Shown in pieces: positions 12,850 through 64,000 of a stretch of 64,000 nt of DNA. This DNA is from Syncephalis fuscata S228. Taxonomy: Eukaryota > Fungi > Zoopagomycota. Numbering within the stretch: position 1 is the first letter of the stretch; every line of letters starts with the position of its first letter. The stretch is taken from contig JAHLTZ010000004.1 of the NCBI GenBank assembly GCA_025786725.1, positions 744,001 to 808,000 of the forward strand, in the 5' to 3' direction. Under the pieces are notes generated by a model. It saw only the letters and a program-made list of their open reading frames with translations. It made no database searches and was not told where the DNA came from. The position numbers were made by a program, and so were the translations under genes.

Positions 12850-13170
12850 CTAAATTGATTTAAACAAAAAATGTAACATGTTATTTGATTTCTTTGAAAA
12901 ATTTAAGACTGATCATTGTTGTTGGCCATGTGTAGAAAGATTGATTGAATATCAATAGAAGCCATATATCGCGATTCCATGTTGTTCCACATTACTCCTG
13001 TTGCCTGTTTGTCATACTGCACACCAAACTGTTATATGATCTATTTCTTTCCTATCTTGTTTCTGTTTACTTGAACCACACTTGTATATTATAATAATCA
13101 TATTTAATAATTGCAATTATTTTATTCTTTTTATAATTGTAAACCATTTCAACAAAAATATTTAACAATT
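12850..13170 (-). mobile_element. Fanzor1/TnpB 3'-end remnant, subtype B
   Basis: Reverse strand reads CGTTWNRD(frameshift)MASIDIQSIFLHMANNND; near-copy of 45317-45630. Confidence 0.7.
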
Positions 13171-13628
13171 TAGTGTAAAAAGCCTTTTATTTTATTAAAT
13201 GTTATTTCAACTTCAACTAATACCGTAATGTGTATATTTAATTACATTATTGTATTGATAATTACACATGAATTGATTAGTGTTGGATGCAATATTATAC
13301 ATGCTATAGTAATGAGTGAATGTTTAATTGTATTTAAATGTTGAGGGGTGAAATGAATAAATAAAAATGTAAGAGTCAAAGCGCAATAGCTTCGAATACG
13401 TAAATACTCTGCATTTCACTTTTAAAGCCAACCGTCTATTTCCACAAGTATTTCTCTATGACGCAATCACTTGTTTCTACCAACACTCCCCAGTTACCAG
13501 TAACACTGGCGTTATTTTTTGTTAGTTTATTGATATTAACGGGGGCTCTACTGCCCTCTTTTCTGCCAACTGGCCTCTGCTTGAATTCTCGGCTTCCTTT
13601 CCTTTCGAAATTCTGTTCATTCTCTAAT

Positions 13629-15883
13629 ATGTGTCGTATTTCAACGCAAGATCCCAATTCATTTGCTAATGTCGAGCAAATTCAAACACGACATATCCAT
13701 CTAGAGCTTGAGGTTGATTTTAAGCGCCACACACTGATCGGGCAAGCCCGTCTTCAGTTAGAAGCCATTACTGATGACGTCACTAAAGTCGTCTTGGATA
13801 CTCGTGCTTTAAAAATTAGTGGCGTTCAGCTTGCTAATCACACGGGACCGATAGAGTACTCTTTGGCGTCAGCTCATCCAATTTACGGCTCGGCTCTTCA
13901 GGCAACTTTACCTAAAGCTTATACAGCCGGAGAAAAGCTTGAATTGATTGTTGCTTATGAAACTACAAAAGAAAGCGGTGCTTTACAATGGCTAGAACCA
14001 AGGTAAATCGCCCAAATTAACCATACATCTTATTTACTAAATATATGGATAGCCAAACAGTTGGAAAGCAACATCCTTATCTTTTTACTCAGTGTCAAGC
14101 GGTAAGTAAAGAATATAGGTATATAATAATTTGCCAATATTTAATAAACTACCAACACTAGATCCATGCTCGTAGTTTAGTACCAATCCAAGATTCGCCT
14201 TCTATTAAGCTTACCTACTCGGCAAGCATCCGTGTACCTAAACCACTCCGTGCCCTTATGAGTGCATTGTCGATTAGTCACTCACCCAGTGACGATGGCC
14301 ATTTAATTACATATCAATTTGAACAGCACACTAAGATGCCATCCTATTTAATTGCACTGGTTGTTGGAAATTTAGAAGGGCGAGAAGTAGGACCGCGCTC
14401 TACCGTCTGGACCGAGCCTGAAGTAATTGAGAAGGCAGCTTGGGAGTTTGCAGAGACGGAAAGCTTTATTGCCACTGGTGAGAAGTTACTTACGCCATAC
14501 GAATGGGCGCTACGACTTGCTTGTCTTGCCGGGCTCTTTCCCTTATGGTGGCATGGAAAATCCATGCCTTACATTTGTAACACCCACCTTGTTGGCAGGT
14601 GATCGATCTCTGGTAGATGTTGTAGCGCATGAAATTGCACATAGCTGGATGGGCAATTTGGTAACTACCAAGAATTGGGAACATTTCTGGCTGAACGAAG
14701 GCTGGACTGTATTTATTGAACGAAAGATTATTGGGCGTCTACGTGGCGAGCCTTCGCGCCAATTTTCAGCCATGCTTGGCTTTTCTTCACTACGTAAAGA
14801 TATTGAGCTTTTTGGCGTTACAAGTCCGCTTACAGCATTGACACCGAATCTTACCGGTATAGACCCGGATGATGCTTTTTCACGTGTGCCTTACGAAAAA
14901 GGATTTAATCTGCTGTATTACCTGGAACAGCTGTTGGGCGGCCCAGAGGTTTTTGAGCCATACATGAAGGCCCATGTACAGCAATTTGCTGGTAAATCCA
15001 TCACGACCGAGGAATGGAAGACATTTTTGTATACATTTATGGAACAACGTCACGGTGCAGAGAAAATTAAGACATTGGAAACTGTCAATTGGCATGCATG
15101 GCTTAAAGAGCCAGGAATGGTAAGTATTTAGTTATTTGGTTATTTTAAATTGTAATTAAAACTAACGATTCATCTTTACTGATATAACCATTATTAGCCA
15201 CCAGTGACAAATCAATTTGATCCTACATTGGCAAATGCATGCATCCGTCTTTGCGCAAGGTATATTGAAAGGGACAAATATATACCATTTCTAACATTGT
15301 CCACAGGTGGGAAGCAGCACGCAATTCAGATAAAACAGATTTCTCTGCCGATGATATAAAGACTTTAATCCTTATCAAAAAGGTAGATGATTTATTTGAT
15401 AACAGCAGCATCATCACCATCAGCTAATTGTTATACTATAATAGTCTTGTTCCTCCATGACTTTCGGAAAAGGAACCGCTATCCAAGGATAAACTTGATC
15501 TTATGGAATTTGTTTATAAATTTAATCAAGTTCAAAATTGTGAAATTCGCTTTTCTTGGCAAATGCTTTGTTTAAAGGCTGCATACCAGCCAATTTATTC
15601 GTTTGTAGTTGCATTTGTCAAGGAACAAGGACGGATGAAATACGTTCGTCCGCTATATCGGTAAATTCGAAAAGAGTGACATAGTTATTACAACTATAAC
15701 TGTTTTTTTTGTTTATTTAGTGCTCTCTACAAAGTAAATCCAACGTTGGCGCGTGATACGTTCACTTCTTTCCGTGATACCTATCATCCTATTGCAGCTC
15801 GTATGATTGCAAGTATTGATACATGCATAATTATTTAAAGCTAATTAGTTGTTTTTATTTAGGAAAAGGATATTATGGGCTAA
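13629..15883 (+). CDS. LAP2: Leukotriene A4 hydrolase / M1 leucyl aminopeptidase, multi-exon; apparent 1-bp indels near 14505 and 15360
   Basis: [37 protein letters not shown]...[28 protein letters not shown]-terminal [11 protein letters not shown]; an alternative in-frame ATG exists at 13458. Confidence 0.93.
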
Positions 15884-16189
15884 TATATTATAGTGGAGTA
15901 TCTACTAATAACAGCAATTAGCTCATTCAACTGTCACCCAATGAATAAAAGTTAACATTTTGCTGATATAATAATAATAATAATTTTAAGAGATTAATGC
16001 ACATTAAAACTCTAATGTATAATATTACATCCAACATTAATTGATTTATGTGTAATTATCAATACAATAATGTAATTAATTAGTTATCTTTATTATTGTT
16101 TTAATATATACATTGTATTATGATAATAATTGTTCAAAATGTCATTTATTTAGTCAGATTAACTATAGGAAAAGTGGTTGTTTAATAAA

Positions 16190-16510
16190 CAACTTTATAA
16201 TAATTATATTAATCTTGATCTTACATCACAAATATGCCCAACATGCAATAGTAGAATATTAGAAAATAGAAAAGATCATTTAGATGCAATAATCCATGCT
16301 GTACATAGATGTAACAACAACAAATGCGGAATAATATGGAATCGCAATCATATGGCTTATATTAATATTCAATCAATCTTTCTATGCATGGCCAACAACA
16401 ATAATAATTGGCCTTAAATGTTTTAATGAAATCAAATAGTATGTTACGTTATTTATTTAAATCAATTTATTAACAGTATTTTAATAAAAAAATAATATAA
16501 TTTATGATGC
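16190..16510 (+). mobile_element. Fanzor1/TnpB 3'-end remnant, subtype A
   Basis: TSQICPTC...HAVHRCNNNKCGIIWNRNHMAYINI is a CxxC...CxxxxC zinc finger plus a RuvC-III-like WNRDxxAxxNI motif (D changed to N); homologous to 45005-45316. Confidence 0.75.
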
Positions 16511-16890
16511 TTGTTAACATTTATCTTAATGCCCAAAATACAATGTGTTGCTTAGTTGTATTAATTTCATAATAAACTTATTCTTTATTGGTTATTAATT
16601 ATCACAGTTTAACTATAGTAAACTGAATAACTTGCATAACATTAAGTAAAAATAAGATAGAATTAGAAACTAGTATACTTTATTGATATGAATAGAGATA
16701 GCATTAAACAGTAAATATGGCTAGTAATAGAACCTGAATGCTTTGTAGTGTTTCATAATTAAAGCAGCGTATTAGTTTATACAATTACCCATACTTCACA
16801 ACTAACAAATGTTTGCTCGTCATATCTTCTTAATAGCTGTTTATTGCTGGTAGTTATTGCTAATACTTTATATATGTGCTATTATTGTAC
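16510..16890 (+). repeat. Diverged direct repeat, copy 1 (copy 2 at ~18795-19175)
   Basis: Shared blocks such as taacat.tatcttaatg..caaaatacaatgtg and tgaataacttgcat...agtaaaaataagata.a.tagaaac. Confidence 0.75.
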
Positions 16891-17190: not shown

Positions 17191-18700
17191 AATATTATTT
17201 AGTAACAAAAAGATGACAATACTATGTATAACTCTGCATAGAATTGATTAAATTACATGATATTTTGCACAAATGTGTGTATAGAATATAGATAGCTATT
17301 GGTAAAGCATACCGTTATTATATTGTGTAATGGTATAATAGTAGTGATAATATGTTAATAAATATGCAAAGATAGCTGTTTTTTACAGATTATGACTTAT
17401 ATAAGTAAAATACAGCAAAATGATTGCTGGATTCGAGTTCTCCGTGCTTAGTTATCCAGATTGGTATGATTTATAGGGCAACGATTTTGCAAAAAATGTT
17501 AGTTAAAAAATGCAATTTACGTATTTTTAATTTACTTAGTAAACGTTGATAAAATCACGTATAACTTTACGTATAGTCAAGCAAATTGTATGATATTTTG
17601 CACAAGTGTGCACATAGCGTATAGGTAGCCATTGGTACAGTATACCGTTATTGCATTGTTTGATGATGCAGTAATTGTAATAGTACATTAATAAATGTAC
17701 AAAAATAACAGTTTTTTACAGATTATAACATATATAAGTAAAATACAGCAAAATGATTGCTGGATTCGAGTTCTCCGTGCTTAGTTATACAGATTGGTAT
17801 GATTTATAGGGCAATGATTTTTGCAACAAAAATAGGCCAAAAATGCCATTTATGTGTAAATCAGTTAACAAAAAATTAATATTATGTATATCTATGAATA
17901 AAATGCACAGTACATTGTATGTCTAATATTGACTTGCTATGTGCTATTTTGCACATAGAGTGGTTTGGACATTTGTTATGTCAAATTTTATTTAATATTA
18001 AATTTAAGCGTAAATTTAATTGTTTTGTTAACCGATTTACACATAAATTGCATTTTTACTAACATTTTTTGTAAAAATCATTGCCCCATAAATCATACCA
18101 ATCTGTATAACTAAGCACGGAGAACTCGAATCCAGCAATCATTTTGCTGTATTTTACTTATATATGTTATAATCTGTAAAAAACTGTTATTTTTGTACAT
18201 TTATTAATGTACTATTACAATTACTGCATCATCAAACAATGCAATAACGGTATACTGTACCAATGGCTACCTATACGCTATGTGCACACTTGTGCAAAAT
18301 ATCATACAATTTGCTTGACTATACGTAAAGTTATACGTGATTTTATCAACGTTTACTAAGTAATTAAAAATACGTAAATTGCATTTTTTAACTAACATTT
18401 TTTGCAAAATCGTTGCCCTATAAATCATACCAATCTGTATAACTAAGCACGGAGAACTCGAATCCAGCAATCATTTTGCTGTATTTTACTTATATAAGTC
18501 ATAATCTGTAAAAAACAGCTATCTTTGCATATTTATTAACATATTATCACTACATTATCCATTACACAATATAATAACGGTATGCTTTACCAATAGCTAT
18601 CTATATTCTATACACATTTGTGCAAAATATCATGTAATTTAATCAATTCTATGCAGAGTTATACATAGTATTGTCATCTTTTTGTTACTAAATAAATATT
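17191..18700. repeat. Large inverted repeat (arms ~17191-17823 and ~18071-18700), each arm made of about two copies of a 333-bp unit; foldback-like
   Basis: Arms are reverse complements with few differences; the core agtaaaatacagcaaaatgattgctggattcgagttctccgtgcttagttat occurs twice on each strand. Confidence 0.93.
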
Positions 18701-18794
18701 TGCTATATTTTTACAATTATGATTAAAAAATCTACAACTTAGATGGCCAAGCAACACTTTATTTTGGCGCTACCTTATAATGCTAGCCTTTGAT

Positions 18795-19175
18795 GTGTGC
18801 TAACATCTATCTTAATGTTCAAAATACAATGTGCTGATTGATTAGTATTACTTTGTGAATAAACTTAGTTTTATTGATCATTAGCCAGCACAGTTTGACT
18901 ATATAAAATGAATAACTTGCATTACAAGAAGTAAAAATAAGATAAACTAGAAACGACTATTCTCATTATTGATATTGAATAAAACCATCATTATAATAAA
19001 TATATTTAATAATAGAATTTAAATGCTTGTACTATATATCATTAATGCAGCACATCAGCTTATATAGCCGCTTATATGTTTACAAGCAACAAGTAGCCAC
19101 TCATTGTATCTTTTTAATAGATATTTGCTACTAGTACTCAGTGCTAATATCCGATATGTATATTACTACTGTAAC
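18795..19175 (+). repeat. Diverged direct repeat, copy 2 (of 16510-16890)
   Basis: Visual alignment with copy 1. Confidence 0.75.
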
Positions 19176-19502: not shown

Positions 19503-20780
19503 TTATTGCATATGAGCGGATTTCAATAAATTTATGATAGATTCTGCAATTCCACAGTCAGATTGATTGGTATCATATAATTCCGTCATGAAATTTACAA
19601 GCATTTTCAATGCTTGTGTATGCTTTACATCCAGTTTGGTAGGATACTGCGGAACTCTGTTGTTTTCGTCGGCACATTGGTCGCCAGATTTAATTTGCTG
19701 ATTGTTTAATAGGGCAGACAGGTTGCTTTTTAACAGCTCAAAGGGATCTTGCTCTGAGCTCTTAGCTTCGTCATCATATAAAGCACCGGTGATGGCATGA
19801 TAAATTGTTTCGCTAAACAGTTCATTATTGGAGTCACAAGAATTCAGTAGAATATTTGAATTCATTTTAGCAAGTGATGTAGATGGCGCTAATTTCACAG
19901 TTTCTTCGACACTAGGATACATAAACTGAACAACATCGTAATCAACAACGGTTGCCACGATTTGGTTGGTCACAGGATGAACGCCAGCAACAATATCTAA
20001 ACCAGATAATTAGTTTATTATTTCTAGGCGCCATAAAACTTACTTTTAAGAGCTATATCCTTGTGTATAATGCCGGCGCGACGTAAGTATAATACACCTA
20101 TGTTTGGTATAACATTAGCATTTTGTTGTTTAAATACAAAAAGTACTTACCTTGCAGCGTTTGGTAGAATATTTGAGGCAAGTTTTTAGCTTTATATTCC
20201 CAGCTTTTATCAAAAATAAATTTGTCTAATGCTTTGCCGTATGCAAACGAGTAAATAAAGCATTTTCCGTGTATTTTTTTAGGATCGTTGGGATCTGGAA
20301 TATCAAATGTTTCTAATGGCTGTTGGATATTGTTTTTTCCTGGCGCATTATTCAATTGATTTTTGAGTCCATTTAGTATCTAATAGTATTATATAAGCAG
20401 TTGATTGTTATATAATTATCAAGTCTTACAGCAAAAACTTTAATTTCGTTGCTGATCCATCTGTCCATAAGCATGCATTTAATAAATGCATCATCTTTTC
20501 CCCATTTTGTATAGCCGAAACTTATTTTTTCGTTTGAGGCCTTCCAATCGACCGACTCCAGTTTGGGCTTATTTTGTTTTTTTAAATCATCTAAATATTT
20601 TTTACCAATTCCATCAAGAGCGACCTTGCCTATCAAATATTTACTTATGTTAACACTAATAATCAATATAATGTATAGCTTACCATTGAGATTGCCATTT
20701 ACAGCGGTGCTTGTTGGTGTGCTAGATAGTAGCACAGCAATGCACGCTGCGGCAATAGTAAAAATACTGATCTTGATCAT
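19503..20780 (-). CDS. Secreted atypical protein kinase-like protein (5 exons)
   Basis: Signal peptide; after splicing GT-AG introns the product shows AFIKC (beta3 Lys), NEIKVF (alphaC Glu), QIFYQTLQGVLYLRRAGIIHKDIALKNIV (catalytic loop), VVDYD (DFG position) and IYHAITG (alphaF-like). Confidence 0.8.
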
Positions 20781-22734: not shown

Positions 22735-23669
22735 ATGCTGAGTAGTATTGCGGCGCGTGTGTTCATCACGCTAACTTGTTTGGCAGTATTTGCCAATGCT
22801 TTGAAATTTAACATGGCCGCAGTGCCTTACTCGTCAGGCAAAAAGAAATGCTTCACACAATGGGTTCCTGCAAATACTTTGGTCATGCTTAATTTGAACG
22901 CTTCTCCCGGAGCACATATGCGCGTTGATGTTGAGGTAAGAACGTTACTATGTGTAGATCCAACGAGCTTGTCAGAGTGCGGTCCGTAATATGAATCTAT
23001 ATCTCATGCCGTTAGTTGGTGATTTCTTAACTTTGTCTTGCTATATCTACCCGTAGAAAATAGTCTATACTTATCTAATATTACTATGGTATTTAGGTTT
23101 TTGATATTACGCAGAGCCGTAATGAATACGCTCGTAAGAAGGATATTTTGGACACGAAAATCGCGTTTACTACACACGAGTTTGCCGACATATCTATCTG
23201 CATTATGAACCATCTTGCACAAGGTAGCTATGGGCTTGATTCATATTACATTTCAGTAGCTAATCCAGATATAATAGGCTACACGCCAGGAACCGAGTTT
23301 TATCGCCGTGTTGAGATGCACCTAGATGTTGGTGCCGACACAATCGATTATGAGATGATGGCCAAGCGCGAGAAATTGAAGCCTATGGAAGTTGAGCTGC
23401 GACGACTAGAGAAGATGATTGACGAGGTCGTTAACGAGATAGACTACTTAAAACAACGTGAAGCCAAAATGCGCAACACGAACGGTAAGTTGATGATCGA
23501 CTACTATTCCTCTGTCCTCTAATTGTATTTATGCTCATTTGTTTACATAGAGTCCACCAACGAACGTGTTCAATGGTTTAATATTGCATCTATTCTTGCT
23601 CTTATCGGTCTCGGTCTATGGCAACTTGTGTACTTGCGCCAGTTCTTCCATTCCAAGAAATTGATTTAA
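22735..23669 (+). CDS. ERV25: p24/emp24 delta family GOLD-domain cargo receptor (TMED10/Erv25)
   Basis: Signal peptide, [33 protein letters not shown]-terminal [12 protein letters not shown]. Confidence 0.92.
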
Positions 23670-23849
23670 ATAAGCATGGTTTACTGCTGATTGTTAAACG
23701 AGATTTGGATCAAGTGAATAAATATCGCTATTTTACTTATTATGTGCTATGATCTGATGTGGGCAAGTAGAACCAAATAACCAAATAAATGGTTCATTTA
23801 GTTAATTGAGTTATATGTCTCCATTATTATTAAAGCTAGTATTAAATAA

Positions 23850-25240
23850 TTTATTAACAATTATATTGTGATTTATGCGTTAAATGACTAATATTTAATA
23901 ACGCCCAATCTATTGAACATGATGATGGGTGGTGAGTGACATCAATCATCAAATACTCATCATTGTAGATTCATTATCTAGTATGCATATATCATCACAG
24001 TATGTGTTATTACCATCTATACCCGTCACTTTACTTGATTAACATTAAAATCATATCTAACTGACATGATCTAGTTTATTTATAAATATTCTTAATAAAA
24101 CATAACTCCGTTCCTATTCATATCATTTGTTATATCAATATAATCAGTGAACAGACTAAATACGATATATCAATTTTATTAATAAAAAAGTTGGAATCAT
24201 ACGACAACGGCTATAAACAGCGTATAGTCAATATATAACAGAATGATAAACATTATACTAAATATACAGCATTGAACAAGATTAGCAATCTTAAAGTTAT
24301 TAAGCAGATGACTAATATTAGTTGAATTCTTAATAATAGTGCTATAACAAAATAAAAATAGAATTGGATGAGTAAGACTAGGCGAGTATAGAATGATATG
24401 GAATAAAATGAATATACGATGAAAATAATACAATAAGTAGTATTAAAACTATGGTGTATATAATGTAATGGGGGGAATGAGCATTTGTGCTAAGCATTTG
24501 CATTTTTAACAGCATTCGCGTAACTAACTACATATTCGTTTTATTGAACATGAAACTGAATGCTGAATAGTATCAATCATTAAAATATTTATTATTGTAT
24601 ATTTATTATTTAGTACACATATATCATCATTACAATACTATATTATTGCTGTTTACGCTGTTTTATTTCTAACCTTCTTTATTTGCATACTCATTAATAT
24701 ATCATGTTCCTATTTTGCTTAAACTTGTTATTAGCATGTATACTCATCATTCTGCCCGACTAGCATCAAAGCCATAGTCGACTCGCATTAACTGATTTGT
24801 CTACCAGACAGTTACACGATACATATATGCATGAGTAAGTAAACAAAATAATTTAAATTTATTAGTAATTAAACTAGCATTAAACAAATAACAGTTTCAA
24901 ATAACGTGTTGATATTATATAATAGTAATATATAAAATTATAAATATATGGTAAGAAATTATATAAAACAATGTCAAAGTTATAGTGCATATAACGTAAT
25001 GAACAGAATGAGTGGAGTATATAGGATTATATAAACAATAGAATGTGCCTAGTATATCATAGAATGATATAGATGAATAGAGGATATATGCATACTGGAT
25101 AATGAATTTATGATGATGAGTATTTGATGATTGATGTCGCTCACTATCCATTATCATGTTCAATAGATTGGGTGTTATTAATTGTAGTCATTGACCACCA
25201 AACAAACAGTAAATGTAATGATGTGCTGATTAAATAAAAC
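23850..25240. mobile_element. MITE-like non-coding element with inverted terminal copies of a dispersed repeat (23850-24000 on +, 24960-25240 on -)
   Basis: caatctattgaacatgat.atgg...gtgag.gacatcaatcatcaaatactcatcat occurs on opposite strands at the two ends; a degenerate internal copy lies at ~24535-24635. Confidence 0.6.
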
Positions 25241-33975: not shown

Positions 33976-35003
33976 TTAGAGATCTACCTTTACGAGGGCT
34001 TTGATGTTAGCCTTGACGATTGCAAGAATAGCAATGCGGATATCGGCAAGAACCTTGACATCGACCTTAACAAGGGCGTTGACCTTAACGGCAACGTCGG
34101 CCTTGATGCTAGCTCTGATGTCAGCGAGAACCTTGATAGCAGCATCGATCTTGACAAGAACGTCGGCATCGACCTTAACTCCAGCATTGATGCGGGCATT
34201 AACTTTAGCCTTGAGATCGACAAGAACCTTGACGGCAGCATCAATGTGAAGATCGATAAGAGCATGAATATCGGCAATAACACGGGCTTTGATGTCTACG
34301 TTAACATCAGCCTTGACAATGATCTTGGCAATAGCATTGAGGAGGACATCGATCTTAGCACTGATGTTGGCCACAATGTTGGCCCGAATGTCAGCAATAA
34401 TCTTGGCAATAACCTTAAGGTCGACATCAACATCGACATCAAGCTTAATTCCGGCACCAATCTTAACATCAACGTCGGCTTTGATGTCAGCAATGACTTT
34501 AAGGTCAACATCAGCGCCAACGCCGACACCAACGCCGACACCGACACCGACACCAACGCCGATATCAATGCCACCACCGTGGCCGCCGTCATGACCACCG
34601 TCGTGGCCGCCATCATGACCACCATCGTGACCGCCATCATGACCACCATCGTGACCGCCATCATGACCACCTCGTGCCCCATCGTGCCGCCATCATGACC
34701 ACCGTCGTGGCCGCCATCATGACCGCCATCGTGACCACCGTCGTGGCCGCCATCGTGACCACCGTCGTGGCCGCCATCATGACCGCCATCATGACCACCG
34801 TCGTGGCCGCCATTATGACCACCGTCGTGGCCGCCATTATGACCACCATCGTGGCCGCCATTATGACCACCACTACCGTAGTCAGAGCCTTTTGAGGGAA
34901 CTGTTCCAGGCTTTGTATTGTAGCCGTAGCTTTCAGTGGTGGCGATGCCTTGACCAGCGATGGCCAACAAGAAAAGAGCCGAAGCGACAAAAGCGAATCT
35001 CAT
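33976..35003 (-). CDS. Secreted protein with GGH(D/N) repeats and a C-terminal Val/Ala/Ile/Asp/Lys-rich domain; apparent frameshift at ~34670-34690
   Basis: Signal peptide MRFAFVASALFLLAIAGQG; 12-bp repeats; downstream frame ...GIDIGVGVGV...ADIKADVDVK...KALVKVDL*; TATAAAG at ~35171-35177 on the minus strand. Confidence 0.8.
34575..34875. repeat. Coding 12-bp tandem repeat (GGHD/GGHN)
   Basis: Iterations of catgaccaccgtcgtggccgccat-type units. Confidence 0.9.
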
Positions 35004-35697
35004 TGTTAAAATAAAATAGATATATTACTAGTAAGTTGACTGTATCTAATATAGCCAATATAAACAACTAGATTGACTATAATCAATGTAAATAGTAGGT
35101 AGTATAAGCAGAAAGGGCACAGTGAATTGAGCGGTTAATCGTAATAATGGATGTGTCTAACTAGACGCCACTTTATAGTTGAACCAACCAGTTCCAAGCT
35201 GTTTCATTTCTGATACATGTGGAAGCCGTTCAATAGGCAGTAGACACCCGCACTATTGCTGTACTGAAGTTACAGCAGGCTGATGTCCAAGCTATCCGCA
35301 TGTATTTCCATCTGCATTCCATGAAAAACCAGTAAAATTTCGCACAGCCACGCTGAACCAATCACAAAATAGAATAAATACAGTCACAATATGTTGTGTA
35401 ACCGCGTGTATAACGCATCAAACAATAGGCATGCTTTTTGCCCGCTATGGTTCTACTCGTTTTCTTCCTTGCCTTCCTTGCTGTGCCGTTTTCAATGGCA
35501 ATAATTTTGTGCTGTGTGTGTACCCCAGAGCTGCCATCCAGATTTGCTTCATGAGCAAAAGGCGTCACAGGCGCCAGTCCATCACCGTCTTTACAACTTG
35601 ATTGTCAGTAATATTAATCTGCCTTTGCTGCTTGACTTGCCAATTGTATGGGTGACTGTGCGGTAAACGGCACATTCTCAAAATTTGTGCTGGATGC

Positions 35698-35843
35698 CAA
35701 GTAAACTAATTTCATCCTACAATGACCGGCGGGTAGTCGTTCCTATTTTTACAAGCGAATAAAATCAAAACAAGTAAACTAATTTCATCCTACAATGACT
35801 GGCAGGTAGTCGTTCCTATTTTTACAAGCGAATAAAATTAAAA
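35698..35843. repeat. 73-bp intergenic tandem duplication
   Basis: caagtaaactaatttcatcctacaatgac.ggc.ggtagtcgttcctatttttacaagcgaataaaat occurs at 35698 and 35771. Confidence 0.92.
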
Positions 35844-36548
35844 TGGATCAGTAGCCCAGTCTTTTTGTCGTAGTTCTGTCGACGCAACTCCGCCTGGCCG
35901 CATGGCTATCATGCAGCCGGTTTAAACCAATGAACACGGATGAACGTCATGCAGGCAATAATCCTGCTTTTTCTTAGAATGAGCAATATTTGTAAAGAAT
36001 CCCGAATATGGTTCCATCATTGTTGAGAAACTGATTGATCATTCCTGGCCCCACATGCGGATTTATGGCGGATGAACTTTTGACAAGCCGTTTTTTTTGT
36101 TACGCGACTCAACATTAAACAAGCGTCATCAATTGAATGCACATGTGGCAGCAGGGACTTTTGAAGTTTCTTGGCATCATACTTTAGTAAAATTCAAGCA
36201 AAATGCAGGAGATAATACTAGAATATTTGTCATCTTTTAAGAATATCGTCCAATTGGACATCACATGTCCTTTAGCTACCTGACAAAACTGATCGCCTAT
36301 CGGTTGCTTATATCACGTGATCCTGTTAAATGTACAATAAGCAGCCGCTCAACAATCGATTCCATTACAATTTAAATAATAATATGAGTAAAAATTGTAT
36401 TGTTTAGTAAATAAATATATAAAACATTAAATACAACGTATAATTGCTAATACAAAAGCTACATGTATAATAACAAATATTTTAAAATTACTATATTACT
36501 AAACGAGTTGACAGTAAAAACGTATAATGGCCTCCATCTAGCAAATTC

Positions 36549-37684
36549 TTAAACTGCTTGCGTAGCTCTGCCATTATCAGACACTCGTCCAAGTGCGTTA
36601 ACATTATTGAGTACGCGTACACCCGATGCGTCGACGTTAATAAGAGAGCTTCCATTATTATTATTGGTACCATTGTCACCAAGATTGTTGCCACCAGGAT
36701 TATTGCCATTGCCATTATTATTGCCACCAGGATTATTGCCATTATTGCCATTATTGCCATTTTGTCCATTTGTCCATTTGTATTTTGTGACAATTGACCA
36801 CTAGACACGCTTCCCAAAGCATTTACATTGTTCAATAGTCGAATTCCCTCAGCATTGATATTAATTAAACCGCTGCCATTATTTGTAGATCCAGGATTAT
36901 TATTACCATTATTTCCGCCACCGTTGTTGTTTAATCCATCAGGATTGCCGCCATTTGTGTTTTGTGATAGCTGACCATTGGATACACTACCAAGAGCATT
37001 TACATTATTGAGAAGACGAATCCCTTCACCATTAATATTGATTAAACCATTATTGCCGTTGCCGTTCCCATTGCCTCCATTGCCGCCAGAATTATTGCCA
37101 TTGCCGCCAGGATTATTGCCATTGCCGCCAGGATTATTGCCATTGCCGCCAGGATTATTGCCATTGCCACCAGGATTATTGCCATTGCCGCCAGGATTAT
37201 TGCCATTGCCGCCAGGATTATTGCCATTGCCGCCAGGATTATTGCCATTGCCGCCAGGATTATTGCCATTGCCGCCAGGATTATTGCCATTGCCACCAGG
37301 ATTATTGCCATTGCCACCAGGATTATTGCCATTGCCGCCAGGATTATTGCCATTGCCGCCAGGATTATTGCCATTGCCGCCAGGATTATTGCCATTGCCA
37401 CCAGGATTATTGCCATTGCCACCAGGATTATTGCCATTGCCACCAGGATTATTGCCATTGCCACCAGGATTGTTTATACCTCCTGGTATACCAGTGTCTG
37501 GATTGTTTGGAATAATTGGAACGCCTGGTGTAGGTACACCCCAAATGGGTGGACCACCATGAACAAATCCATTGGAAGAACCTGGGTGATTTCTTAAATA
37601 ATGGCGATATTTTTGTGGTGCTGCATCGCTTAAATAAGTTAAAAGTATGGCCGCCACAACCAGTTGAGTTAAAAAAGACTTCAT
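36549..37684 (-). CDS. Secreted Gly/Asn-rich repeat protein: (PGGNGNN)n plus three LIN(I/V)xxxG(I/V)R(L/V)LNNVNALG modules; apparent frameshift at ~36770
   Basis: Signal peptide MKSFLTQLVVAAILLTYLSDA; about 18 21-bp repeats (37090-37470); the third module SLINVDASGVRVLNNVNALGRVS is recovered in the shifted frame. Confidence 0.8.
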
Positions 37685-38812
37685 GGTAACTTCTAGCGGT
37701 AGATTGGACTTGAAATTAAACAAGCTGAAGCACAATAGCAAGGATATCTAATGATCAAGTACAAGCAAAAAAGTAGTGATGTAATGCTACTACATGGTTG
37801 TTGTATTTTATATTTTATATTGAACGCCAACTAGCATTAGATGTGCTGTTTTGCAAGTTATAGAAACTCCCGAAACACAAAACATCTGCCCAAGCAAAGA
37901 TTATTCTCCTTTATCTGCGTCGACGATCTTTGGCGGTCATTCGGCACTGCTACCTCAATGTTGATTGCCATAAGGCGTATTCAAACTGACCGTAGATCCA
38001 TGCGTGAGGTGGCTCAAGTATGCTTGCTGCAACTGACACAGCAGTTGCAATTGTATTTGGTCAAATTTATAGATTGTTTTGAGGTCTGATCAGCCGCATT
38101 CAATTACAAATTGGACATTTAATTACAAATAAAATAAAATATCAGCCGTGCATATTAAGCAGCTTATTTAAGTTAAAGCAAATTATATAATTTAACAATG
38201 TTCTCTTAAAACAGCTCTGTGATTGACAAGATGCATTGCAACTCTATATTCGAACATCAGTAAAAATATAATTTTTTATTAGTTTATTATCACTGGTTTA
38301 TGATTAAAGCTACTTTTAAAAAACCAGTTGTTATTTTTTACGTCAAGTAACTATAGCATTTTAATGAATTAAATAACAATTTTAAAGCATATAAATGTGC
38401 GTAAAATAAAAATATTAAAATTTACTTTTTAATGTTAAATTCTTTTGAATAGTTATTTTTCAATATAGATAAAGAGTAATGCTGGAAACATTATACAAAG
38501 TATTTATTTATGGTGCATAACCGTGGAATGGACAGATATTCGTATTACTAAGTATGGTAATACTAATATTTTAAATAATTTAATCACACTTTTACAAGTT
38601 ATTAATGCACTGCAATAATTTGCGGATTACATCGTAATTTATTCTGATGTAAGCATTTTAATGCTGGTTTCAAAAACCGAATTATGCTGCGAAAAACCCG
38701 GTAGTAATTAGGTGACCGAATTTAATTAGAAGGGTACAATTTGCAGAAATAGTTGCACGGATTAACAGCGTGGCTGATGTTGGACAGTATTTATACGTTG
38801 GACAAACGGGAT

Positions 38813-40620
38813 TTAAAGGTCGACAGCAGCGTTGATGTCAAGGTCGATGAGATTACCTTCTTTTTCGTGCTTGGGCTTATCCTTGTCACCACCGCCATAC
38901 TTGCCACCGGTGCTTGGTTTGTCACCGCCACCATACTTGCCGCCGGTGCTTGGCTTGTCACCACCGCCTGGAGCACCAGTGGGGCATGGAGCCTTGTGCT
39001 CAGTGTCTGGCTTGTTACCGCCGGATGGAGTGCTACCATAAGCTGGCTTGTGGTCAGTGTCTGGCTTGTGACCGCCGGAGGAGTGCTACCGTAAGCTGGC
39101 TTGTGGTCACCGCCGGATGGAGTGCTACCGTAAGCTGGCTTGTGTCAGTGTCTGGCTTGTTACCGCCGGATGGAGTGCTACCATAAGCTGGCTTGTGGTC
39201 AGTGTCTGGCTTGTTACCGCCGGATGGAGTGCTACCGTAAGCTGGCTTGTGATCAGTGTCTGGCTTGTTACCGCCGGATGGAGTGCTACCATAAGCTGGC
39301 TTGTGATCAGTGTCTGGCTTGTTACCGCCGGATGGAGTGCTACCATAAGCTGGCTTGTGGTCAGTGTCTGGCTTGTTACCGCCAGTGGTTGGGCATGGTG
39401 CCTTTTGCTCGGTATCTGGCTTGTTACCACCGGATGGAGTGCTACCATAAGCTGGCTTGTGGTCAGTGTCTGGCTTGTTACCGCCGGATGGAGTGCTACC
39501 ATAAGCTGGCTTGTGGTCAGTGTCTGGCTTGTTACCGCCGGATGGAGTGCTACCGTAAGCTGGCTTGTGGTCAGTGTCTGGCTTGTTACCGCCGGATGGA
39601 GTGCTACCATAAGCTGGCTTGTGTTCAGTATCTGGCTTGTTACCGCCAGTGGTTGGGCATGGTGCCTTTTGCTCGGTATCTGGCTTGTTACCACCGGATG
39701 GAGCGCCACTGTAGGCAGTTGAAGGTGGAGCTACATTATAATGACGGCGATACTTCTTGTGGTGTTCGTTATCGCCACCTGGAGCTGGACCTGATGGTGG
39801 GCATGGAGCTTTGCCATTTGAGCTGTCTTCCTTGCCACCAGCGGGTGTGGGCGTGTAGGCTGGCTTGGTTGGTGGAGTGGTAGTCTCACCACCTGGAGCT
39901 GGACCTGATGGTGGGCATGGTGCCTTACCATTTGAGCTGTCTTCCTTGCCACCAGCGGGTGTGGATGTGTAGGCTGGCTTGGTTGGTGGAGTGGTAGTCT
40001 CACCAGCGGGTGTGGGCGTGTAGGCTGGCTTGGTTGGTGGAGTGGTAGTCTCGCCACCTGGAGCTGGACCTGATGGTGGGCATGGAGCCTTGCCATTTGA
40101 GCTGTCTTCCTTGCCACCAGCGGGTGTGGGCGTGTAGGCTGGCTTGGTTGGTGGAGTGGTAGTCTCACCACCTGGAGCTGGACCTGATGGTGGGCATGGT
40201 GCCTTACCATTTGAGCTGTCTTCCTTGCCACCAGCGGGTGTGGATGTGTAGGCTGGCTTGGTTGGTGGAGTGGTAGTCTCACCAGCAGGTGTGGGCGTGT
40301 AGGCTGGCATGGTTGGTGGAGTGGTAGTCTCACCGCCTGGAGCTGGGCCTGCTGGTGGGCATGGTGCCTTACCATTTGAGCTGTCTTCCTTGCCACCATA
40401 ACTGGCAGGTGGAGTTGCATAGTTATTAGTTCCAGCTGGAGCAGTTGTTTCTATGTAATACAAAAATAAAAATGGTAAGTTATCTATTATCAAATCTAAC
40501 ATTGAAATCGACCATCGATCTCTAGTCATTGTGCGGCTACTTACGATAGTGGGGCATAGCCGAGCTGACGCTCAAGGCGGCCAAAAGGAAAAGAGTTGAG
40601 GCAATAACACTGGACTTCAT
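38813..40620 (-). CDS. Secreted Pro/Thr/Gly/Lys/Tyr-rich repeat protein (cell wall or coat-like); 2 exons, with indels in the repeats near 39060-39150
   Basis: Exon 1 MKSSVIASTLFLLAALSVSSAMPHY then a GTAAGT intron; repeats GGKEDSSNGKAPCPPSGPAPGGETTTPPTKPAYTPTPA and PSGGNKPDTDHKPAYGST; ends GNLIDLDINAAVDL*. Confidence 0.8.
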
Positions 40621-44861: not shown

Positions 44862-45004
44862 GTCAATGACGCTTGCAATTAAAAAGAATAAAACAAGTAC
44901 AAATAAAAATGTAATAAAAATAATTATAACAAATTTCGCTTTAAAGACTCAAAATAGGGGTGCAAGGTAAAATTCAAGCACTCTAAGTCGCACTGTTATG
45001 CACA

Positions 45005-45316
45005 ACATAGTTATATTACTTACTATTAAATGTTATTAATAAATCGATTTAAATAAACAATGTAACATACCATTTAATTTCTTTGAAATATCTGAGGTCG
45101 ATCATTGTTGTTTTTGGCTATATGTAGAAAAACTGATCGAATATTAATAGAAGCCATATGATTGCGATTCCATGTCATTCCACGTTTGTTGTTATTGCAT
45201 CTATGTACAGCATGGATTATTGCATCTAAATGATCTTTTCTATTTTCTAATATTCTACTGTTGCATTTTGGGCATATTTTTGATGTAAACTCAAGATTAA
45301 TATAATTATTAAACAT
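45005..45316 (-). mobile_element. Fanzor1/TnpB 3'-end remnant, subtype A
   Basis: LEFTSKICPKC...HAVHRCNNNKRGMTWNRNHMASINIRSVF...DRPQIFQRN*. Confidence 0.78.
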
Positions 45317-45630
45317 CTTTGTTGAAATGGTTTACAATTATAAAAAAAATAAAAGAATTGCAATTATTAAATATGATTGTTACAATATACAAATGTGGCT
45401 CAAGTAAACAGAAACAAAATAGAAAAGAAATAGATCATATAACAGTTTGGTGTGCAGTATGACAAACAGGCAACAGAGTAATGTGGAACAACATGGAATC
45501 GCGATTATATGGCTTCTATTACTATTCAATCAATCTTTCTACACATGGCCAACAACAACAATAATAATTGGCCTTAAATGTTCCAAAGAAATCAAATAAC
45601 ATGTTACATTCTTTTGTTTAAATGTTTAAA
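45317..45630 (+). mobile_element. Fanzor1/TnpB 3'-end remnant, subtype B, back-to-back with subtype A
   Basis: tgtggaacaacatggaatcgcgattatatggcttct translates to CGTTWNRDYMASITIQSIFLHMANN, with the RuvC-III Asp intact. Confidence 0.75.
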
Positions 45631-45884
45631 TAGCAGCTACTGATACAATGCTCTGTTATATTTAATTCTACTTTATGGAATGATAATGTTATTATATTAC
45701 ATTGATATTTATTGTGAATGATCATTTAAACACAATTAATCCAATCAACTCGTCAACTATTTAAATCGTTACAATTGATTGTGTAAAAAGATTTACTGCC
45801 CCTGGGGGATGAAAGTAAATATTGACCAATTACTGTTTATTCAATAAATCTTAAATAAATGGTTTATTCGTATAATAGAGAAGA

Positions 45885-57858: not shown

Positions 57859-58455
57859 ATGAAGTTCTCCAAGGTTCTCCTCGCTTTTGCCGTCCTTGCC
57901 CTCGCTGCCAGTAGCGCCGTTGCCGCACCTATCGATGCCAATGTCTTGGCCGATGTAAACGTCAATGCCGACGTTCTCGTCAACGCTCTTGTCGACGTCA
58001 AGGCCGATGTCCATGTTAAGCTTCTTGCCCTTGTTTTGGCCGATATCAAAGCCAAGGTCAATGTCAATGCCCACGTCAATGTTGATGTCGTTGCCAGAGT
58101 TGTTGTCAATGCTATTGTCAACCTCAATGCCAGAGTTCTCGCCAAGGTTGACGTTCACGTCGGTGCTCTTCTTGACGTCAAGGTTGCTGCCGACATCAGG
58201 GCCCACATTATTGCCGATCTCGACATCTGGGTTGATGTCCTTGTCCGTGCTTTGATTAAGGCTGACGTTAAGGTTAATGCTAACATCAAGGCTGACATCA
58301 AGGCCGCCGTTATTGCCAAGCTTGATGTGATCATCAAGGCTCTCGTCGACGCTAAGGTCCGCATCACCGCCGACATCAAGGCTAAGATCACTGCGCAAAT
58401 CAAGGCTGACATCCATGCTGATGTTGATGCCATCATTGCTGCCCACATTCACTAA
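57859..58455 (+). CDS. Secreted Val/Ala/Ile/Asp/Lys-rich protein, paralog of the C-terminal domain of 33976-35003
   Basis: Signal peptide MKFSKVLLAFAVLALAASSAVA; ADIKAKV-type units; strong C/T-ending codon bias; TATAAAA at ~57694. Confidence 0.85.
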   Translation: MKFSKVLLAFAVLALAASSAVAAPIDANVLADVNVNADVLVNALVDVKADVHVKLLALVLADIKAKVNVNAHVNVDVVARVVVNAIVNLNARVLAKVDVHVGALLDVKVAADIRAHIIADLDIWVDVLVRALIKADVKVNANIKADIKAAVIAKLDVIIKALVDAKVRITADIKAKITAQIKADIHADVDAIIAAHIH

Positions 58456-58739: not shown

Positions 58740-59175
58740 GCTTATTAGTCATTCAATGTGATTTTGGTGTTTAAATGACTACAAGTAGAATATTAATATA
58801 TTTAAACTACCATTCTTTCTATTGAACGTAATGAGAAGTGGTGAATGGCATTAGTAATTGGAATACTTATCATCGTAGTTTTATAATGCAATGAGGGGAA
58901 TGAGTAGAGTGTGTTGGTACATGTAAACAATAGAATATGTCTAGTATATTGTAGAACGATATATATTAGTGTGGAATAGAATGGAAATAATATAAGTAAA
59001 TGGTGGGTATGTGTACTGAATATACGCATGCTGGATAATGAATCTATGATGATGAGTATTTGATGGCTAATGTCACTCACCGCCCATCATCATGTTCAAT
59101 AGATTGATGTCATTAAATTTAATTATTTAACCATCAAAGCACAATAAATGTGATGATGTGATGATTAATAAAGTT
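58740..59175 (-). mobile_element. Further copy of the 23.9/25.1-kb repeat family, with partial inverted ends (MITE-like)
   Basis: Reverse strand caatctattgaacatgatgatgggcggtgagtgacattagccatcaaatactcatcatcat; extended similarity to 24960-25240. Confidence 0.65.
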
Positions 59176-62931: not shown

Positions 62932-64000
62932 GGCAAAGGTTAAATGCGATAGATAGACGGGCTGATGGCGCTTGTTTGTTTATTTGTTTAGTTGCAGTGG
63001 ATAGTAGGTGTTGGCGGGGTAGATGAATCGTATTTTAGTTAGTTATCGTAAGCAAAAATACAGCGATGCTAGGTGCTGTATAGGATATTGCTGGAGCAAG
63101 TAGCGTTAGCGTTAGTGATTCAGACGAGAAAATAAAAAGCAAGTAGCGGCCGGTGGCATAGCTGCTTGGCCTTATAAATAAGTATATAGCTATTTAAAGC
63201 CACGCTGCCTAAATAAGTTATTAGCATACTAAAAGAAGCAGCAAATCAAGCGGAAGTATAATCCGTTTCTACAAGAATAGCCACTGTTCTTTGTCTTTTT
63301 TGGTCTAATTATTTGAGTTAAAAAAGCTAAAAGCCAAAAGCTATATTTCTATACTGAGCGATAACCACTATAATTTATTCTATATCGACAATAATATAAA
63401 ATACTAAGCATAAATACATTATTATTTTATTTATTTATCTATTATTCAAATGGGCTAATAATCCATTTCGCTACCTTTTAGCGTCTATTAATGTTATATT
63501 ATTTTATTAACGGCGTATGCTATGCTTACACTTGCCTTTATTATTTTTATATTATTTTCGCTATTACACTAATAGTACATTTCATTTTAATGGCTTTTGA
63601 TGTCAAATAACTTTATTCCTTTAACGCATTTAATACTTAGTATTCTTATAATAATGACATTTATTTTTTGATGTGTTTACATTTTAATCTGTTCTATGAT
63701 GTGCCATTTGCTGGTTAGATTAGCTTTTATCATTTCACATTGCATTTATTAATCAATTAACTGGCTGTTTATAAATATTGACTGACAGGCTCACATCTCA
63801 CAATCTACATCATCACATTTCCTTTCTCTTTCTTCACACTTGACAGCATATATCCATTGCATATACTTGTACACTCCATATATACTATATAGATAGTTTC
63901 AGTAGTTGGCTGACTACTAGTTAGATACACACACCTTCTACACTATGTACTTGCATTGCTATTTGTAATATTAACTTTTCTATTAATCACTTTTATCACA

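Follow-up and report, generated by a model that had tools for sequence, protein, structure and literature searches.

Two outward-facing Fanzor1-type 3′ remnants flank LTA4H in Syncephalis fuscata and recur joined back to back on the same contig

Results

Organization of the LTA4H locus

We analyzed a window of 64,000 bp of contig JAHLTZ010000004.1 of Syncephalis fuscata (GCA_025786725.1), in which the record position equals the window position + 744000. A contig walk added 39.6 kb, and the results therefore cover 103 kb of one contig. The window contains a gene for LTA4H, which is bracketed by two short pieces, designated B and A, that resemble the 3′ ends of Fanzor1 elements and face outward (Table 1). 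At approximately 45 kb, 29 kb away, the same two pieces are joined directly in the same relative orientation. The A end extends to about 16520 in the 16-kb copy and to about 44994 in the 45-kb copy, beyond the limits given in an earlier sequence-only reading of this DNA. The B arm of the 45-kb copy runs on as repeat to about 45800–45829, a stretch in common with a further copy at 91 kb. Self-comparison of the window also showed a large palindrome nearby.

Table 1. Features of the split (13–16 kb) and fused (45 kb) loci, in window positions.
Feature	Position	Strand	Remarks
Remnant B	12851–13170	minus	Decayed, frameshifted Fanzor1 3′ piece; core in common with A at 12851–12993, diverged zinc-finger part to ~13104, then innermost 65 bp
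Junction 8-mer, left copy, TAACAATT	13163–13170	+	Microhomology or TSD
Inner inverted repeat, left arm	13235–13302	none	68 bp, 91%; flanks LTA4H
LTA4H (M1 aminopeptidase) gene	13629–15883	+	7 introns; annotated 13629–15838
Inner inverted repeat, right arm	16015–16082	none	68 bp, 91%
Hairpin, 8-bp stem	16176–16194		Just inward of the right junction
Junction 8-mer, right copy, TAATAATT	16198–16205	+	
Remnant A	16198–16469	+	Fanzor1 zinc finger and RuvC-III, single open frame; Fanzor homology starts at 16208–16218
Tail T1, past the Fanzor core	16463–16520	+	In common with the 45-kb A arm and the 69.2-kb copy
p24/EMP24 gene	22735–23670	+	Synteny marker: ancestral downstream neighbor of the LTA4H orthologue
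Fused copy, A arm with tail T1	44994–45311	minus	
Fused copy, lone junction 8-mer, TAATAATT	45304–45311	minus	
Fused copy, B arm	45304–45623	+	
Tail T2	45624–45829	+	97–99% to the tail of the 90.7–91.4 kb A-type remnant over most of its length

A and B resemble the 3′ ends of Fanzor1 elements

Piece A corresponds to the C-terminus of Fanzor/TnpB proteins and contains the [TS][TS]xx-C4 zinc finger-RD motif. The A peptide of the 45-kb copy matches Pfam PF07282 at 27.7 bits and that of the 16-kb copy at 24.7 bits (cut-off 26.3), and a local HMM scores A at about 90–100 bits. PF07282 was the only domain returned by a family scan of A, and a word search with the A peptide gave no candidate. A large protein search with the peptide yielded 39 matches (best E 4e-14); among the 20 of these that were looked up, all nine named clusters are from Mucorales. 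A rough tree based on 79 columns places the A copies with Rhizomucor, Thamnidium and Rhizopus (support 98/87), and the best PDB match for A is the Fanzor1 of G. theta, at an E value of just 0.065. Judged by these matches, the remnants are nearer to eukaryotic Fanzor1 than to bacterial TnpB. Neither metagenome nor viral contigs gave a match when scanned with the A peptide, an alignment or the inner inverted repeat described below.

Piece B is frameshifted, and its match to the Fanzor profile is confined to the last ~35 codons. The RuvC-III part of B is recognizable. Three of four comparisons relate its zinc-finger part to A-type DNA with z about 3, a homology at the DNA level only. On the basis of this homology we dropped a candidate interpretation in which B was a left end of non-Fanzor origin bearing a long TIR. 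All four arms agree until about 33 nt past the stop codon, and two Thamnidium copies end at this same distance. The earlier identification of both pieces as Fanzor 3′ remnants was borne out by PF07282 for A, and by profile match and DNA homology for B; on sequence criteria they derive from the 3′ ends of Fanzor1 elements of a Mucorales-like group.

Only C-terminal pieces were found in the 103 kb, where a full-length Fanzor ORF with all three RuvC motifs is absent and the longest Fanzor piece (at 91 kb) is frameshifted. The remnants cannot encode a nuclease. A search for a structured omega RNA gave no folding signal over shuffles (z 0.5 to 1.25; −0.5), and Rfam gave no match. Helitron-type ends were considered as well, for which we saw weak, after-the-fact patterns only.

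The split and fused pairs share descent and a junction

Self-BLAST of the window aligned 12858–13170 with 45623–45304 at 91% identity and 16198–16500 with 45311–45011 at 86% identity, in agreement with the first description of B and A as a pair that flanks LTA4H and recurs joined in the same orientation. A and B resemble each other in their last ~145 bp only (76–85% identity), and together the arms make an inverted repeat of 147 bp and 84% identity. The parts unique to each piece are identical between the two loci at 118/125 positions for A and 165/176 positions for B (~94% in both cases).

The pieces meet at an 8-mer that is present once in the fused form and twice in the split form, where one copy lies on each side of the insert and the two match at 7 of 8 positions. 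The insert between the 8-mers is 3027 bp (13171–16197) and carries LTA4H. A direct match of 7/8 occurs in 0.26% of position pairs in these regions, which argues that the 8-bp overlap, seen earlier as a microhomology at the junction, does not reflect chance. The ~94% identity of the unique parts, combined with one shared 8-bp meeting motif, shows that the split and fused loci share descent. The suggestion that one structure had been split by rearrangement therefore stands. Of the signs that the earlier reading named for a fortuitous bracketing, variable breakpoints and a single-copy, syntenic gene are present (see below), but pure chance is ruled out by a junction that is exactly the same in both forms.

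An assembly artefact produced by chimeric or fold-back reads would be compatible with the probable indel errors in this assembly and with the large palindrome nearby. The arms and copies differ by 6–18%, however, and carry shared-derived patterns, whereas chimeras would be near-identical, which makes an artefact very improbable.

Between the loci, the block of 94% identity extends from 45623 to about 45150, after which identity falls to 70–80% in the outer A arm. Such a profile, high at the center and lower in the outer A arm, resembles a copy tract more than a unit that moved whole. Both loci were inspected for an outer TSD around the whole unit, and none was found in register at either; candidate 9-bp and 10-bp repeats at 45 kb were dropped, as they are out of register with the ends and lie in very AT-rich DNA. 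Longer Fanzor homology inside the bracket would prove that the split form preceded the fused form; our search for it was negative, and neither remnant at the LTA4H locus extends inward beyond the limits of the fused copy. An alignment of tail T1 to 18703–18810 suggests T1 as a candidate native flank of the 16.5-kb locus, and if it is, the direction between the split and fused forms would be fixed.

LTA4H is linked to EMP24 as in related fungi

LTA4H was searched exon by exon; for steps that called for a full sequence we took the annotated protein (P0182, 595 aa). The core exon aligns with LTA4H structures in the PDB (E 1e-84), and the exon-intron layout is that of the S. pseudoplumigaleata orthologue. 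Compared to its orthologues the gene has two indels, of 2 bp at 14507/8 and of 1 bp at 15457/8. Since both fall within or beside short base runs, and a frameshift also affects another gene in the window, they are likely to be assembly errors.

EMP24 is located 7 kb downstream of LTA4H on the same strand. The same order and strand are found in Thamnocephalis and in an environmental Zoopagales contig (JGI L003), with 258 and 175 bp, respectively, between LTA4H and p24/EMP24. In a quick tree of LTA4H with moderate support (SH-aLRT 93 and 81), the syntenic genes of Thamnocephalis and L003 fall in one clade with the window gene, and the LTA4H of S. plumigaleata, which has other neighbors, groups with a second Thamnocephalis copy. 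The S. plumigaleata locus had been a candidate for broken synteny, which was dropped in view of this grouping; its gene is probably a paralogue. The LTA4H protein forms a cluster with one member, from one contig, and no second copy of the gene was found in 103 kb; LTA4H thus appears to be single-copy. The linkage to EMP24, as in two relatives, indicates that the gene still lies in its ancestral neighborhood.

These data bear on the proposal, made with the first description of the locus, that two Fanzor right ends bound a single composite or Pack-like mobile unit that exists in a filled form with LTA4H and in an empty form. The arms do form an inverted repeat, the putative filled and empty forms lie 29 kb apart, and the missing outer TSD is not fatal to the proposal, as Thamnidium relatives lack a TSD as well. 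The cargo, however, is single-copy in the 103 kb and still stands beside its ancestral neighbor. Furthermore, the outer ends are not common to the two forms as a unit (the B tail differs, z 1.9, and the outer A arm has 70–80% identity), the fixed, distinct left end of the relatives is absent from the supposed unit, and both further copies (see below) are single-armed. We consider a composite unit of this kind quite improbable, and hold the same view of the broader notion that two Fanzor right ends alone, in a family acquired from Mucorales hosts, form a unit that moves or captures a whole single-copy host gene and occurs filled and empty throughout the genome.

Further copies reveal a dispersed mosaic family

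Two more copies were found in the contig walk. The copy at window-equivalent 69219–69306 consists of the A tail alone, attached to an unrelated repeat that it meets at a short common motif. The copy at window-equivalent 91370–90676 is a longer, frameshifted Fanzor remnant, in which an A-type zinc finger (81% identical to the 16-kb copy) is combined with a tail that matches the 45-kb B arm at 97–99% identity as far as about 45800. Both copies are single-armed and have in common an upstream module of 83 bp (94% identity), possibly a left end, whose strand is that of the Fanzor tail.

In total, the 103 kb contain six Fanzor pieces with varying breakpoints, one of the copies being a fused A+B, and all are remnants of 90–500 bp only. 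Tail T1 is present in three copies (z 4.4–7.7) and tail T2 in two; for the 12.8-kb B copy, sharing of T2 is not clear (z 1.4–1.9). The A tail is common to the split and fused loci (z 4.4) at about 70% identity, and the outer tails past the core follow sub-lineages. The family to which A and B belong as modules is dispersed and mosaic, and its breakpoints vary. In the Thamnidium relatives, the left end (600 bp) and the right end are fixed and the interiors variable; they have neither TIR nor TSD, and their copies are 3′-overabundant and 5′-truncated.

An inner inverted repeat flanks LTA4H

Within the bracket, LTA4H is flanked by a 68-bp inverted repeat of 91% identity, which is absent from the earlier reading and lies 64 and 115 bp inward of the junctions. 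Its extension out to the junctions is not significant (z 0.2–0.6 for the DNA between), and no further copy of the repeat or of the insert ends was found in 103 kb. The spacers between the inner repeat and the Fanzor core measure 241 and 240 bp and are not alignable (z 0.15), and the homology of the 130-bp spacers is not significant. Measured from the inner repeat to the Fanzor tail, the arms are 455 and 452 bp long and have sharp inner boundaries. The insert starts at its two ends with TAGTG and TAAAG, which both fit (T/C)A(A/G)NG, a start motif of hAT elements (background about 0.011 per position for each). Three of the first five bases match between the ends, and the insert 13171–16197 has no TIR in the range of 5–27 bp by which hAT TIRs are defined.

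The resemblance of both ends to the hAT motif would fit a history in which the fused A+B came first at both sites, and the 3.0-kb segment 13171–16197 with LTA4H was moved over a few kb into the 13-kb seam by a cut-and-paste (hAT-like) transposase, with duplication of 8 bp. Elements of the hAT type make 8-bp TSDs (PMC4316626). An insertion explains the 8-bp direct repeat (7/8) at the insert ends, single in the empty form and indistinguishable from a microhomology, as well as the inner inverted repeat, which is of similar age; it also fits the equal distance of the A and B halves from the fused copy (94% identity each). Nevertheless, there is no TIR beyond the three matching first bases, the inverted repeat lies inward of the ends and is separated from them by DNA that cannot be aligned, and both the repeat and the ends lack a further copy in the 103 kb. 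The segment would also have had to land at most 7 kb from EMP24, in the ancestral orientation and inside a repeat seam of 80 bp, and no footprint is seen between LTA4H and EMP24. We regard an insertion as the main rival to the reading favored below, although on balance we find it unlikely.

The dimensions of the arms allow another interpretation, in which each arm is a complete non-autonomous element of ~455 bp, with the inner repeat as its left end and the Fanzor tail as its right end. Elements of two subfamilies would then lie head to head, and the fused copy would have arisen by an inverted-repeat-stimulated deletion between short direct repeats. The near-equal lengths, the sharp inner boundaries and the equal spacers are in line with this, and the 83-bp, 94% upstream module on the other copies suggests that units with a left end and a right end exist in this genome. 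Against it, the 130-bp spacers are not alignable and the inner repeat is absent from both other copies. We regard this interpretation, a variant of the one favored below that also accounts for the inner repeat, as improbable.

Discussion

The reading that we favor, with a rough probability of 0.45, is that LTA4H, a housekeeping gene, has stayed at its ancestral site and that the fused structure is a microhomology-joined copy of the ends that bracket it. S. fuscata would harbor a dispersed family of decayed Fanzor1 elements, kept as 5′-truncated 3′ ends that exchange parts by recombination, and two such remnants would have come to flank LTA4H, facing outward. The 45-kb structure would then be an internally deleted copy of the LTA4H locus, made when repair copied inward from both arms and the new strands were sealed to each other at the 8-bp microhomology, so that neither the gene nor the inner inverted repeat was included. 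Abortive gap repair, or a template switch plus MMEJ, could have been the route.

The conserved gene linkage, the mosaic family and the identity profile all fit this history, which builds on the Fanzor identity of the pieces, their common descent, the 8-bp overlap and the existence of copies with other breakpoints. Its direction, from split to fused, and its repair mechanism are our inference. The overlap of 8 bp (7/8 matching) falls within the 6–8 bp of breakpoint microhomology expected for MMEJ, and deletion derivatives with 6–8 bp microhomology, mismatches included, have been described (PMC3814204). Likewise, 3′-overabundant, 5′-truncated Fanzor1 families are known (PMC3627910), and the 3′ bias of such families suggests that cutting by a Fanzor may have started the copying. 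An 8-bp repeat that flanks an insert and is single in the empty form is also the signature of a TSD, which speaks against a static gene. Three features are left unexplained by the favored history: the 68-bp inverted repeat within the bracket, the hAT-like start of both insert ends (first five bases) and the equal 240/241 bp spacers. The inner repeat would be accounted for if each arm were a ~455-bp unit.

Pack-type TIR elements and composite transposons carry host genes. The LTA4H locus shares with them a host gene between inverted repeats and a direct repeat of 8 bp that borders the insert; it differs in that LTA4H is single-copy and has kept its ancestral neighbor, the inverted repeats are not terminal and a second filled copy is lacking in the 103 kb. 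Closer parallels exist with the Fanzor1 elements of Mucorales (MCi, ROr, PBl; Bao and Jurka, 2013, PMC3627910), which have the same C-terminal TS-C4 zinc finger-RD motif and include copies that are truncated or deleted but keep the 3′ end intact; the copies of Thamnidium elegans end at the distance from the stop codon given above, without TIR or TSD. In S. fuscata, by contrast, the pieces are remnants of 90–500 bp that are mosaic between subfamilies, and two outward right ends occur fused or split by a host gene, an arrangement that we did not find in the Fanzor literature compared. The Helitron2-Fanzor1 elements CRe-1/2/3 of Chlamydomonas are similar in their 3′ excess, variable 5′ truncation and internal deletions (PMC3627910), but often have TSDs of 7–19 bp and Helitron2 terminal structures, neither of which was found in S. 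fuscata. Fanzor "ghost" loci of Spizellomyces are also non-coding and keep the right-end/omega RNA region (Saito et al., 2023, PMC10432273). These ghosts carry 30-nt inverted repeats on the left and on the right, lack an ORF and have a conserved structured RNA, whereas the S. fuscata pieces have two right ends, ORF remnants and no folding signal. The Ozma-derived MITEs Gnome, Elf and Goblin are comparable as short derivatives with 6–8 bp microhomology in which a mismatch is allowed (PMC3814204); in S. fuscata the transposase TIRs and TSD are missing, and the fused form occurs once in 103 kb. The S. fuscata pieces are thus neither functional nucleases nor ghost elements, and our data do not support their being a Pack element. 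Two right ends fused back to back are a new form of a known kind of transposon decay.

Members of the genus Syncephalis are haustorial parasites, mainly of Mucorales. The presence of Fanzors of the Mucorales type in such a parasite, itself a member of the Zoopagales, is a candidate case of host-to-parasite transfer; a literature search found no paper on Fanzor in Syncephalis or Mucoromycota.

The locus bears on how Fanzor1 elements spread without a transposase of their own. Here, Fanzor 3′ ends persist, swap parts, take flanking tails along and join back to back at microhomologies, and this 3′-end pattern fits break-repair copying from the right end. If LTA4H did move, the locus would offer an uncommon example of such ends relocating an entire single-copy gene in a fungus.

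Genes around LTA4H and in the rest of the window

The annotation of LTA4H spans two frameshifting indels, and a further one lies in a secreted repeat-protein gene; all are probably long-read errors. Two LTA4H paralogues appear to exist in Zoopagales, one represented by P0199 and P0011, the other by P0182 (annotated S. fuscata LTA4H), P0190, P0002 and P0181. Between LTA4H and EMP24 lies a secreted, weakly kinase-like gene, which is missing from this interval in both syntenic relatives (Thamnocephalis and an environmental Zoopagales contig). Elsewhere, a cluster encodes secreted proteins with tandem repeats, of Gly/Asn-rich, Pro/Thr-rich and Val/Ala/Asp-rich types; a paralogue lies at 57.9 kb.

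Repeats downstream of remnant A

A palindromic, fold-back-like element of 1.5 kb was observed, with arms that are 93% identical and each consist of two ~330-bp repeats; no second copy was found in the 103 kb of contig. It is flanked on both sides by a direct repeat (74%), whose first copy begins at the end of the A tail and which, judging from an alignment to 18703-18810, may take in that tail. Another direct repeat (360 bp, 80%) has one copy that runs across the window's right edge. A dispersed repeat family, unrelated to the Fanzor remnants, has some copies arranged as inverted pairs and one joined to the A tail.

Positions of the features (window coordinates unless stated)
Feature	Position	Strand
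LTA4H indels	14507-14508; 15457-15458	
Repeat-protein gene with indel	33976-35003	
Kinase-like gene	19503-20780	
Tandem-repeat protein cluster	33976-40529	
Cluster paralogue	57859-58455	
Palindrome	17191-18700	
Flanking direct repeat	16505-16865; 18791-19149	
360-bp direct repeat	63690-64000 and beyond; window-equivalent 87346-87700	
Dispersed repeat	23864-23997; 24542-24629; 24990-25238; 58882-59172; L009 12162-12255	
Longest Fanzor remnant	L012 12881-11447 (window-equivalent 90676-92110)	Fanzor strand
83-bp module, recurrence	L009 12057-12139	
Thamnidium elegans Fanzor1	L006 6813-8464; L007 5739-8464	

Fanzor ends and relatives

The longest Fanzor remnant seen, on contig stretch L012, is frameshifted and carries upstream an 83-bp module, possibly the left end of the family, that recurs on stretch L009. 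The Thamnidium elegans Fanzor1 family has both left and right ends fixed, and has neither terminal inverted repeats nor target-site duplications. The named relatives of the Fanzor piece (9 clusters among 20 looked up from P0123-P0161, the protein matches to the A peptide) were Mucorales in every case. Mucorales are the host group of Syncephalis. Host-to-parasite transfer is possible, although Zoopagales are thinly sampled and the piece is 80 aa long.
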